Of a stretch of DNA of 64,000 bases, positions 5,180 through 10,297 are shown piece after piece. Each line of letters opens with the position of its first letter. Positions within the stretch are counted from its first letter, which is position 1. The stretch comes from Hamiltosporidium tvaerminnensis FI-OER-3-3 (lineage: Eukaryota > Fungi > Microsporidia), in assembly GCA_022605425.2 (NCBI GenBank), contig CM061248.1:1302001-1366000 (forward strand). Reading direction: 5' to 3'. Under the pieces are notes generated by a model. It was not told the DNA's origin. It saw only the letters and a list, made by a program, of their open reading frames with translations, and ran no database searches. A program made the position numbers and the translations under genes.

Positions 5180-7012
5180 ATGACAAACAAAGACAGCATA
5201 AGAGAGTTACTTATTGCCGTTGAAGATTTGAAATCGATATATCCGTTACAAAAGGAAATAAACCATATGAATCCTAAGTATAACCAAGAAGAGATGAAAA
5301 TATTTGTATCTGGTGTTTTGGAAGTGGTAAGTGAGTTGGAAAAAGAAAATTTTACGTTTTTGTACCTTCATAATGTTTTTAAATTGCTGTGTGAAAATTT
5401 AATGAATTTGAAAGGAATTTTCAGTGAATATTTAAAAGTTGTAAATTTTTATTACAAATTTTGTGTTTCTGATTCTCAAAAAATGTTTGAACTTTACAAA
5501 AATTTAATTTTTGCTACTTTGGAAATTACAAAAAATACATTTTTACCAAAAGGATATCCAAAATTGTGTGTGGATGATGCAAATTCTCTTATAATTTTAT
5601 ACATTTCGATGGCGGAATATTTTTATAAATTGGAGTGTTTTGCTGATTCTTTCTATCTTTTGCAACGTGCAAGTGAACTGTTTTCTGTTGTTGGAAGTTT
5701 GCCGCCTAAAGAATTTACAGTGAAATATTTTATTTTACTTTTTAATATTTTTATGAAATCTGACTGTTTTTTCAATGCCTTAAATGCTTTACACAAGCTT
5801 TGTAGTTTTACTGGTGAAATTTATGTTTCTTCACTTAAATTTGATACATTTTATTCAGAATTTATAGATTTAGTTGAAATTACTCGTAAAAAAAACGAAG
5901 GAAATGTGTTTGGTTCTCTTTTTTATAATTTACAACCAGTGGATTTACAAAATATTGTTAAAGTTGTAGAAGAAAGTATGGCAGTCAAGGTTGAAGATGG
6001 AATTTATTGTGATTTTTCATTTGAAAAGGAAAAATGGAATTTTATTTTTGAAAATTTAGGAAAAAATATTCAATTAAATGAAGAAAATTTAGAAATTTTA
6101 AGTTTTTGTAGATTCAAAAACGTAATTCATAAAAAGGAAAAAAATTTACTTTTTTTAGAAAAAATTGGAGATTTTAAATCAGTTTCAAAAATAATTTATT
6201 CTGTGATAGAAGAATTAAAAGAAAAAAAAATAAAAAAAACCATTGAAATTGAAGAATCAGTAAAAGAAAAAATTACAAATGAAGAAATTTCAGATCACAA
6301 AGAAGAAGAATTAGAAGGTTTAGACATGGAAATAAAATTATTAGAAAATAAAATTAAAGAAGAAATTATTTTACAAAAAGAAAATATTCCACAAGAAAAA
6401 ACCGAAAAAAATGTTAAAAACCAGAAAATACGAACGAAAAGGAAACCGATTCGAACTTCAAATTTTATTAAATTTTATAAAATGTTTAGAATTTCAATTC
6501 ATCAGATATTTAAAGATATAAAATTAAATAATGAAGATAAAAATTATAAAATTAGAAATTTGATTAGAAAAAGAGAATTTGAAGAAAAAGAACATAAAAA
6601 TTTGGAATTTTATAAACAGATCGGGGAGATAAAAGAAATTGTGGAGATTTTAAAGAATAAATTAGACGAAAAACTTCGTAATGCGAAAGTACAAGAAGAT
6701 ATTACAGTTTCTGTCATGCAAAAAGAACAAGAAAAACCAAAAGAAAGGAGTTGGAGATCGAAAGAAGTTTCACCAAACCAAGATACTTCTACAAATTCTA
6801 AACCACCCATTTTTATTCCAAAAAAAACTTTATCTTCATCAATACCTATACATCGTGAATACCAACCAAAATCAGTAAATCGTAACATTCCTACATTTGA
6901 AGATTTCATTGCAACACAAAAATCAACTGAAAAATCAAGTGAAAAGGAAGTAATGCATACAGATAAACCTAATGTTTACGTTCCACCACATCTCAGAAAA
7001 AATAAGAAATAA
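5180..7012 (+). CDS. Divergent eIF3 subunit a (Tif32/Rpg1)-like protein
   Basis: 610 aa. KLECFADSFYLLQRASELFSVVGSLPPKEFTVKYFILLFNIFMKS...ALHKL resembles the eIF3a segment KLELW.EA...I..V..L....K..PKP...NYY..L..IF..S. It has a charged coiled-coil C-terminal half, a terminal YVPPHLR, and a CCC motif at 5163. Confidence 0.55.
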   Translation: MTNKDSIRELLIAVEDLKSIYPLQKEINHMNPKYNQEEMKIFVSGVLEVVSELEKENFTFLYLHNVFKLLCENLMNLKGIFSEYLKVVNFYYKFCVSDSQKMFELYKNLIFATLEITKNTFLPKGYPKLCVDDANSLIILYISMAEYFYKLECFADSFYLLQRASELFSVVGSLPPKEFTVKYFILLFNIFMKSDCFFNALNALHKLCSFTGEIYVSSLKFDTFYSEFIDLVEITRKKNEGNVFGSLFYNLQPVDLQNIVKVVEESMAVKVEDGIYCDFSFEKEKWNFIFENLGKNIQLNEENLEILSFCRFKNVIHKKEKNLLFLEKIGDFKSVSKIIYSVIEELKEKKIKKTIEIEESVKEKITNEEISDHKEEELEGLDMEIKLLENKIKEEIILQKENIPQEKTEKNVKNQKIRTKRKPIRTSNFIKFYKMFRISIHQIFKDIKLNNEDKNYKIRNLIRKREFEEKEHKNLEFYKQIGEIKEIVEILKNKLDEKLRNAKVQEDITVSVMQKEQEKPKERSWRSKEVSPNQDTSTNSKPPIFIPKKTLSSSIPIHREYQPKSVNRNIPTFEDFIATQKSTEKSSEKEVMHTDKPNVYVPPHLRKNKK

Positions 7013-7965: not shown

Positions 7966-9022
7966 TATGAGCATATGCTACAAAATAATATATTTGTATT
8001 TTTTAAGCATCTATATACTTAATAAAGTCATATTAATATCAAGTATTTGAAAATGTTGATGAAAAATTTAGAAAAATACATTTCTGGATATCAAACAAGA
8101 AACAGAGAGGCACGTAAAACCTGTATATATTTTTTAAAAACATTTAATTAGGAATGAGATAATAATGAGTAAACAAAGATGCAAAATATGGAATTTTCAA
8201 TCTTTAATTTTACAATTAAAGGCACAAATTTACCAAATAAATTTAAAAATAAATCAGATTTTTGGGGAAATGGATTGATATAATTTTAAAAGATTTAAAT
8301 TAAATGATGGTGTATTAACACCTAACAAAGTATATAAAGATTCTGTTTTAAATTTTCTTTTTTAAGGTTTTAATTTAAACTTTTATAAAAGCACAAGAAT
8401 TTCACAAATTTATACTTTTAAGTTTAAATTGTAACTGAAAATGACAATCATTTAAAAAACTTATTAAAAATATTAAATTTAAATATCAGAAACAGTGTTT
8501 AATAGATAAAAAATGACTAAATAAATAATAATTGTTGTATTTAAAACAATTTACTGAAATTAAATTATCTTATTTGTAAAATATGTTCCATTTATAATCA
8601 TCAATATATTCATATAATATAATGTATATCATATTGTAATTTATGTATTTATTATACATAATTCATAATTCATATGAATGATTAATTATTGTATTTTTGT
8701 TATCAATTTGTTATATATTTTAAAGATTTTATATTTTTGGGATTAAAAACAGAATGAAATACTAAAAAAAGTAACATAAAAAAACATTTCTTGGTTAATT
8801 CATAGCTAATTTAATATTTTGAAGAAAAATAGAAAATGAATATTGCAATGATATATTCTTATATTTAATTTAAAGAATTGGAAATATAAAGAAATATTTA
8901 TTTTTGTATTTTTTAAAATTATAAGAGTTTTTTTTTTCGAAAGAAAATATAAAAATCAAACATAAATCTACAAAATATAATTCTATATAAATATTATACG
9001 GTTTTTATTTTTTTAAACGCCA

Positions 9023-9145
9023 TTACATTTTTTTGTTACATTCGCATATCTGCCCACATTCACCACAAAGTCCTTCTTTACATATTGAACAATCACATGT
9101 TATATCACCACATTTAGTACATTTACAATTGCATTCTAGTGTCAT
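9023..9145 (-). CDS. Metallothionein-like small Cys-rich protein (40 aa, 11 Cys); not in the ORF track
   Basis: Hand translation gives MTLECNCKCTKCGDITCDCSICKEGLCGECGQICECNKKM*. It has CxC/CxxC clusters and no aromatic residues. There is an in-frame TAG two codons upstream of the ATG and AATAAA at 9009-9004 just after the stop. Confidence 0.75.
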   Translation of the reverse strand: MTLECNCKCTKCGDITCDCSICKEGLCGECGQICECNKKM

Positions 9146-9552
9146 GATCTATTCTTTTTGAGAATATTTGTAGTTATTTTTTTATCAAATCACCAATCTT
9201 TTTTTCTGATCAGAAAAAACAAAAAATTGTTTCAGATAAGAATATTTTTATAATTTCTGAATTAAGTGGCTTAATAACGAAGTAAAAAGAAGTAAAAAAA
9301 AATATTTTTCTACTGATTTAAGAGATCTAGAAAATTTCCTAATATGGTATAATTTTAGTATAAATTCGTCTAACCAAAATAGAGAAAAGATTTCGAATTG
9401 TGATTACAATTTCAACGTTTTTAAAATATTTTAGTGATTTAATTAGACATTTAAGTAAAATTAGAAGAGAAAATTCAATAAAAATATATGATAAATTAAA
9501 GATTAAAATATTATATATTTTTACTTAAAGTTAACCATAATTTGATTTAATT

Positions 9553-10297
9553 TCATACCATTAATTTAGACTTCAAAGCGTAAATTGGATTCAAAATGTG
9601 CCGATCTTTTTCCAAAGCGATAACCAAAAAAGTACTTAACAGTAATATAAATATGATTGTAATAAAAAGAGAAAATATCTGTTTTTTGCTAAAAATAGGT
9701 ATCTTTTGGTTTTTCTTAAAATTAAAATTAACTGTAAGTGCATCTAATGGATCTTCTTTGTAGAAAAGCTTTGATCTAAAACAGTTACTTTCAAGAAAAT
9801 CAATATGGTTACCAACGTACTCTGCTCTTAATGGTGTGTCTGTTTCGTAACGAAGTCTAAAAAAATTAAGTTCGCTAATTGTTCTCTGCTGAATCGGATC
9901 TTTAAAATTTTTAATACGGATTCTTCGCCCATCTGCAGATATAACCATCTCAAAAACATATTTACACAGTTGTCTAGCATCATAACAGTAATAAACACCA
10001 CTTACATTAAAGCCTGCACCCTTCAGACTCTCCATTTTACTTAAACACCGCACTCTAGCTATATAATAATCACATTTTCTATTATGGCTATCTTTTATCA
10101 AATCTAAAAAAGTTTTTTGTGTAAAAGCCTCAATATTTGTTGCCTCCAAAGCACATCTCTTACTTCCTTCCTTTTCTAATATAACAACCATTCCTCTCAC
10201 AAATAAAATAGTTTTTATATTTCTATCTGTTACATTCTGTAACAGTATAAACCTATCAATACATTCTAATCAATCGAATTTGTTTGGTTGGTTTCAT
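9553..10297 (-). CDS. Conserved-looking hypothetical protein with a C-terminal TM anchor; 5' end interrupted by a 4-bp duplication (alternative ATG at 10191)
   Basis: The track ORF starts at GTG 10200, and the frame stays open to 10269. ATG 10297 joins in frame if one AATC copy at 10268-10275 is removed. Hydrophobic C-terminus IFSLFITIIFILLLSTFLVIAL. Confidence 0.75.

Follow-up and report, generated by a model that had tools for sequence, protein, structure and literature searches.

Does an open reading frame of 40 codons, rich in cysteine and set between two longer genes of a microsporidian, encode a metallothionein, and is it a gene at all? The frame belongs to Hamiltosporidium tvaerminnensis FI-OER-3-3, a parasite of Daphnia magna with a near-chromosome assembly of 17 contigs and 21.64 Mb (PMC10542269). 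We analysed the surrounding stretch of 64,000 nucleotides (the window, whose positions are used below) together with the rest of the genome, other Hamiltosporidium assemblies and public sequence collections.

A short cysteine-rich reading frame

The frame runs on the minus strand (9023..9145) from an ATG at 9145-9143 to a TAA at 9025-9023, and its 40 codons translate exactly as an initial annotation of this DNA had quoted them. We list it as a Cys-rich, metallothionein-like coding frame with its stop on the grounds of its sequence, a chance test, a rise in G+C, single copy and conservation, each of which is taken up below. Two codons before the ATG there is an in-frame TAG (9149..9151, minus strand), so that a 5′ extension of the frame is impossible. 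The predicted peptide has a mass of 4.34 kDa (4343 Da) and a calculated pI of 5.05. As the initial annotation had counted, 11 of its 40 residues are cysteine (27.5%; positions 5, 7, 9, 12, 17, 19, 22, 27, 30, 34 and 36), and Phe, Trp, Tyr and His are absent, again as claimed; there are only five aliphatic residues. The cysteines form four CxC and three CxxC motifs and no CC doublet. The Cys-rich part reaches from codon 5 to codon 36, bounded by the ATG and the TAA, and no Cys-rich continuation was found in the flanks in any frame.

Within the peptide a weak internal repeat was observed, residues 9-15 (CTKCGDI) resembling residues 27-33 (CGECGQI), with 71% agreement over 21 nt at the DNA level. 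When the next CxC is included, the unit reads CxxCG-x-I-(x)-CxC (residues 9-19 and 27-36). Beyond this one 21-nt pair, the frame and its surroundings displayed no DNA repeat structure. The last codons of the frame, K38-K39-M40, contain a homopolymer of seven A (A7; 9028..9034, minus strand), which is identical in five assemblies.

No signal peptide was found: the N-terminus (MTLECNCKCT) is polar and without a hydrophobic stretch, and the mean Kyte-Doolittle value of the first 20 residues is 0.00. A secreted disulphide-rich peptide, such as a defensin or a knottin-like effector, would carry an N-terminal signal peptide, and the frame therefore does not fit that class.

On the opposite strand, positions 9033-9161 (+) hold a 42-aa ORF that starts with TTG and contains 8 His. 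We do not regard it as a gene, because it mirrors the TGT codons of the Cys ORF (read as ACA, CAT and CAC) and has no ATG start.

Chance or coding sequence

The Cys density of the frame had been called unlikely by chance in this AT-rich background, a claim borne out by both a composition null and a Markov null. For the former, we used the trinucleotide frequencies of the window (Cys codons 2.2%, stops 7.4%) and applied them to both strands of a 21.6-Mb genome. The expected number of open 40-codon windows with at least 11 Cys was 0.003 genome-wide, and that of exact 40-aa ATG-to-stop frames with at least 11 Cys was 3e-6. Third-order Markov simulation of 40 Mb gave a maximum of 7 Cys in any open window. 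The window contains 171 ATG ORFs of 30 aa or more; with its 11 Cys the 40-aa ORF is the extreme outlier, the runner-up having 5. Chance as the source of an 11-Cys frame is dismissed.

The base composition of the frame was also examined. Its G+C content is 0.28-0.33 against 0.12-0.20 in the flanks, and a similar rise occurs in a neighbouring real gene. Third-position G+C is 0.17, and the codons TGT, AAA, GAA and GAT are those favoured by the long ORFs of the window. Together with 700 bp of its surroundings, the frame is present in one copy in the genome and is not part of a repeat. When the genome was scanned for CxCxCxxC, 50 matches were obtained (vs 21 for a control), with 0 paralogues of the 40-aa ORF.

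These data bear on a non-functional reading, in which the ORF would be silent or untranslated, the decayed remnant of a Cys-rich sequence or TGT-rich repeat that by chance is still open and, given how young the Hamiltosporidium lineages are, has not diverged. The genome does contain TGT-rich simple repeats, and the reading would also agree with the lack of an orthologue outside the genus and with the older annotations, three of four of which call no gene here. However, only 0.003 such windows are expected per genome under the composition null, the Cys part fills codons 5-36 between ATG and TAA with no Cys-rich continuation into the flanks, and the sequence is single-copy, free of DNA repeats other than the 21-nt pair and coding-like in its G+C and codon profile. 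We consider a non-functional ORF unlikely.

Other Cys-rich segments were observed elsewhere in the genome. Three nearby ORF copies at C7:300300-301200, 310050-310950 and 317000-317900 begin with a hydrophobic, signal-peptide-like N-terminus and end in a Gly/Cys/Tyr-rich tail closing with QCNCGCGGCGCC; their open segments of 101, 89 and 29 aa contain 13, 18 and 10 Cys, respectively. By sequence, this trio appears to form a family of secreted Gly/Cys-rich proteins that has no relation to the 40-aa ORF. A dispersed repeat at C4:476829, C13:380239 and C14:1241599 has open segments of 51-64 aa that share CECMCCKC. Its richness in aromatics and His speaks against a metallothionein gene, and it probably belongs to a repeat element.

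Conservation within Hamiltosporidium

We compared the locus with the corresponding DNA of four other Hamiltosporidium assemblies, which between them represent both named species: GCA_004325065.1 (H. magnivora), GCA_004325075.1 (H. tvaerminnensis), GCA_004325035.1 and GCA_004325045.1. The exact ORF was present in all four (123/123 bases, including A7 and the stop), and the contig of GCA_004325045.1 equals the window base for base over 4.3 kb. Since the A7 run and the stop are the same in the four other assemblies, the ending of the 40-aa frame is not an assembly slip. A homopolymer error hiding a 12th Cys was likewise rejected, A7 and stop being identical in five assemblies.

Across the five sequences, no variable site fell within the frame, and the intergenic flanks showed 2.7 and 5.2 events per 100 bp. 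For comparison, the coding region of the neighbouring DUF5092 gene carries 1 event in 639 bp. In the 40-codon frame about 3-4 events would be expected, which gives a Poisson P of 0.015-0.05; in an empirical test, 9% of intergenic 123-bp windows were invariant. The frame sits in an invariant stretch of 222 bp (8938..9159, minus strand; five assemblies), which extends 14 nt into the leader and 85 nt into the trailer. In the 4.3-kb alignment only one invariant stretch is longer, that at the DUF5092 coding region (717 bp). The 222-bp stretch is only suggestive, because a non-coding invariant stretch of 213 bp comes close to it. The Hamiltosporidium assemblies differ by only ~2%, so that dN/dS is not measurable. 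We regard the invariance of the ORF as suggestive: it fits constraint without proving it (P about 0.02-0.09). For the reading of a silent ORF, it is a point in favour that the invariance is not significant empirically (the 9% above) and that the 213-bp invariant non-coding stretch lies nearby.

A public gene model extends the frame

The initial annotation had described the gene as unannotated, which holds in part. No gene is called at the locus in three of the four older annotations; in the other, residues 1-36 of the peptide form exon 1 of H. magnivora TBU09396.1, an 88-aa entry named ‘hypothetical protein CWI36_0034p0080, partial’, whose residues 1-36 are identical to those of the 40-aa ORF. 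In the H. magnivora DNA beneath this entry (PITI01000034.1), we found the same whole 40-codon frame with the same stop. The TBU09396.1 model spans 2.4 kb to the contig end, equivalent to window positions 9145-6809, by way of an implied intron of ~2.07 kb that skips the native stop. Its exon 2 (52 residues) maps to ~6966-6809 (-), antisense within the 3′ end of a 610-aa gene.

If TBU09396.1 were correct, the 40-codon frame would open a larger, spliced gene as its first exon; a related possibility would be a short intron close to where the frame ends. TBU09396.1 does join residues 1-36 to 52 more, and a GT is available within the Cys36 codon (T|GTAAC). However, exon 2 lies antisense to the 610-aa gene and runs to the contig end, and in five assemblies the 40-codon frame is whole and closes at a stop of its own. 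The ~2.07-kb intron also contrasts with the splicing of this species, for which H. tvaerminnensis Iso-Seq gave a mean intron of 28 bp and accepted only 98 introns vs 890 predicted in older annotations (PMC10542269). We find a spliced or intron-bearing gene scarcely credible. On this sequence comparison, TBU09396.1 beyond residue 36 is a gene-prediction artefact (mis-splicing). The initial annotation had itself raised the prospect that the ORF is an exon or a fragment of a larger protein; the frame has its own stop in five assemblies, and the one extension of it on record is artefactual.

Flanking signals and neighbouring genes

The hexamer AATAAA, which the initial annotation had noted after the stop, is present at 9009-9004 (9004..9009, minus strand), 14-19 nt past the stop. 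Its position and the signal reported for the species make it a candidate cleavage/polyadenylation signal: in H. tvaerminnensis most 3′ ends are reported to be preceded, at a distance of ~20 nt, by A[A/U]UAAA (PMC10542269). A[AT]TAAA occurs in 32% of random AT-rich 40-nt windows here, so that the hexamer is weak evidence. On the other side of the frame, 54-76 nt upstream of the ATG, lies a perfect 20-21-nt palindrome, TTTTTTCTGATCAGAAAAAA(A) (9199..9219). The A-run length of one of its arms differs between species (event at 9206). The palindrome may be a regulatory site, or it may be without meaning. When the DNA preceding 11 long ORFs of the window was examined for promoter elements, no shared motif emerged with which the 40-aa ORF could be compared.

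Upstream of the 40-aa ORF and in the same direction lies a DUF5092 gene (9553-10191, minus strand; Pfam match 4.8e-43). Its start is most likely the ATG at 10191, giving 212 aa as in its orthologues, and not the GTG at 10200. The DUF5092 protein is kept across Microsporidia, with 67% identity to that of Astathelohania contejeani and 57% to that of Encephalitozoon cuniculi. In five loci of other microsporidia the DUF5092 gene is followed by a convergent LSM gene, whereas here the 40-aa ORF takes that place in the same direction as DUF5092. An ATTAAA starts two bases past the DUF5092 stop codon, from which we infer that the small gene would have a transcript of its own. Its start would fall somewhere in the 408 bp that follow the DUF5092 gene, and its 3′ end would lie ~20 nt beyond the AATAAA at 9009-9004.

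On the other side of the 40-aa ORF is the 610-aa gene (5180-7012, plus strand). Its product belongs to no Pfam family, and its only relative by word search was a 98%-identical Hamiltosporidium protein. With no relative of this neighbour outside Hamiltosporidium, the locus therefore offers no second synteny anchor.

Relatives beyond the genus

We then searched for relatives of the peptide at large. A word-based protein search gave no candidate. An exhaustive phmmer search of 1.84 billion representative proteins returned three matches, of which only H. magnivora TBU09396.1 was a true one. The two others, both long repeat proteins, were rejected as relatives because a weak match of the ‘ICKEG’ type was summed over 7-15 repeats. 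Scans of JGI metagenome contigs and prokaryote genomes for the peptide pattern revealed no relative; in the ESM Atlas no named cluster was matched, and unnamed clusters reached 0.84 at most.

Synteny was used in the same way. At the A. contejeani DUF5092 locus, 1 kb downstream and 9.6 kb upstream contained no Cys-rich ORF and no tblastn match with filters off, and the same result was obtained for six further microsporidian contigs with DUF5092, from public runs and a JGI metagenome (no Cys-rich ORF, no tblastn match). No Cys-conserving orthologue outside Hamiltosporidium was found in these protein, contig and synteny searches. As far as seen, the 40-aa gene appears restricted to the genus within the searched sets, the searches being blind to unannotated small ORFs of other eukaryote genomes. 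The suggestion that the gene was possibly acquired from a host found no support: the 1.84 billion representatives included no Daphnia or other arthropod match, and codon use is of the native AT-rich kind.

Family tests and structure model

Metallothioneins are defined as a class by a mass below about 10 kDa, a Cys content of roughly 15-35% arranged in CxC, CxxC or CC, few or no aromatics and His, and a high metal content in metal-thiolate clusters, and their genes typically respond to metals in expression. The claim that the peptide has the composition of a metallothionein agrees with its small size, its 27.5% Cys, its CxC and CxxC motifs and its lack of aromatics and His. Membership in a sequence family was a separate matter. 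An hmmscan of the 40-aa peptide against all of Pfam-A, a set that comprises every metallothionein model and the zinc ribbons, returned 0 families with E up to 10. In the own genome, neither the vertebrate nor the yeast metallothionein model (PF00131 and PF11403, respectively) found a match, and among PDB sequences there was no match to a solved metallothionein. Metallothioneins are polyphyletic; lack of sequence-family membership is usual among them, and small novel ones turn up regularly. The predicted peptide is a metallothionein by composition, in no known metallothionein sequence family.

The sole rows of the PDB sequence search were the zinc ribbons Rpo12 and eS27 (E about 0.4, not significant). 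The AlphaFold single-sequence model, of low confidence (pLDDT 65.6), displayed beta hairpins at residues 4-9/13-18 and a strand at 33-37. Foldseek against the PDB found nothing below E 2.8, its weak rows being mostly zinc-binding lids or ribbons. These rows and the modelled hairpins and strand are what might be expected if the gene were real and encoded a structural, zinc-ribbon-like microprotein with 1-3 fixed Zn sites, acting as a complex subunit or partner and not as a metal buffer. The knuckles C9-C12 and C27-C30, both CxxCG, add to this, their separation of 14 residues being classic zinc-ribbon spacing. Yet a zinc ribbon needs 4 Cys and the peptide has 11 in its 32-residue core, and it offers no aromatics and few basic residues for a binding surface. 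No Pfam zinc-ribbon family, PF03604 included, was matched at E up to 10, and a complex subunit would be expected in other microsporidia, where none was found. The RPABC4 of this genome lies elsewhere (C13:1475271-1475366, 44.3 bits), and the 40-aa frame is therefore not RPABC4. A structural zinc ribbon seems to us improbable.

Proposed function

We put at about an even chance the reading that the gene is real and expressed and that its product is a cytosolic metal-thiolate peptide, a metallothionein by composition that would belong to no known metallothionein sequence family. In this proposal, the Hamiltosporidium microgene would encode a cytosolic peptide of 4.3 kDa, and its 11 thiolates would hold a metal-thiolate cluster around which the chain folds. 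The chain has no hydrophobic core, so that presumably only metal coordination could order it. In the vertebrate alpha domain, eleven Cys build the cluster M(II)4-Cys11. As the peptide has the same number of Cys, it would be expected to bind ~4 Zn(II) or Cd(II), or ~6-8 Cu(I), per chain.

Such a peptide could buffer or store Zn and, as a secondary gain, could sequester Cd or Cu inside the parasite cell, working beside the metal transporters of the genome. Metal handling and protection from host metal poisoning, both put forward in the initial annotation, would be possible roles. Metal transport genes that we found comprise two ZIP importers, one CDF exporter and a 776-aa frame with an HMA domain (heavy-metal P-type-ATPase-like). 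Searches of the own genome for a Cu/Zn superoxide dismutase (Sod_Cu) and for a copper-fist factor gave no match, and because of this Zn would be the likelier native metal of the peptide.

The lack of a Cu/Zn superoxide dismutase match is also a point for another chemistry, in which a real cytosolic Cys-rich peptide would serve as a thiol redox buffer or oxidant sink, or would bind an iron-sulphur centre. High thiol density would suit a parasite with reduced antioxidant systems. Against this, the sequence has no Cys spacing of the ferredoxin or CIAPIN1 type and no family match, and the peptides of such composition that have been studied are, as established knowledge has it, metal-thiolate binders. 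We judge this chemistry very unlikely.

Returning to the metal-thiolate reading, a fuller version of it is possible, and we advance it only tentatively, at somewhat less than an even chance. It holds that the gene encodes a metallothionein of Hamiltosporidium’s own, unrelated in sequence to others and the first in Microsporidia. It would have evolved after the split from Astathelohania and the other sequenced microsporidia, either de novo or by duplication of the CxxCG-x-I-CxC unit, at the site where others carry the convergent LSM gene, and it would serve to hold Zn or to withstand the Cu, Cd and Zn loads and the metal defences of Daphnia. The initial annotation had known of no described microsporidian metallothionein, and our literature search agrees: within the collection searched no such paper was found, and the listed papers naming both terms treat host metallothioneins.

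Metal handling in microsporidia has barely been studied. If real, the gene would provide a handle on zinc buffering and metal-stress survival in an obligate intracellular parasite of Daphnia, the host being a standard ecotoxicology model. The gene would likewise offer a clear example of a microgene that is specific to one lineage and falls below usual annotation cut-offs, mis-modelled in one public annotation. The metallothionein-like microgene is a well-founded candidate and not a surprise.

Comparison with known systems

Zinc-ribbon microproteins (RPABC4/Rpo12, eS27) resemble the peptide in their length, in two CxxC(G) knuckles ~14 residues apart and in the modelled beta hairpins. The peptide differs from them by seven extra Cys and by having no aromatic or basic core.

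The fungal copper metallothioneins (~25 aa in Neurospora crassa and Agaricus; Cup1 of yeast, PF11403) are like the peptide in being short single domains made up largely of CxC and CxxC motifs. Fungi are related to microsporidia, and the genes of small fungal metallothioneins are very small and often missed by annotation pipelines. The Neurospora type has 7 Cys, whereas the 40-aa peptide has 11 and is rich in Glu, Asp and Lys rather than Gly and Ser, and it does not match PF11403.

With the vertebrate metallothionein alpha domain (PF00131) the peptide shows no sequence similarity, and the two would be unrelated in origin. CC doublets are typical of the alpha domain, in contrast to the peptide, which has none, and vertebrate metallothionein has two domains where the peptide has a single one. 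What the peptide and the alpha domain have in common is 11 Cys in a similar length (about 31-40 residues), CxC together with CxxC, the lack of aromatics and His, interspersed Lys, and order that would be expected from the metal cluster only.
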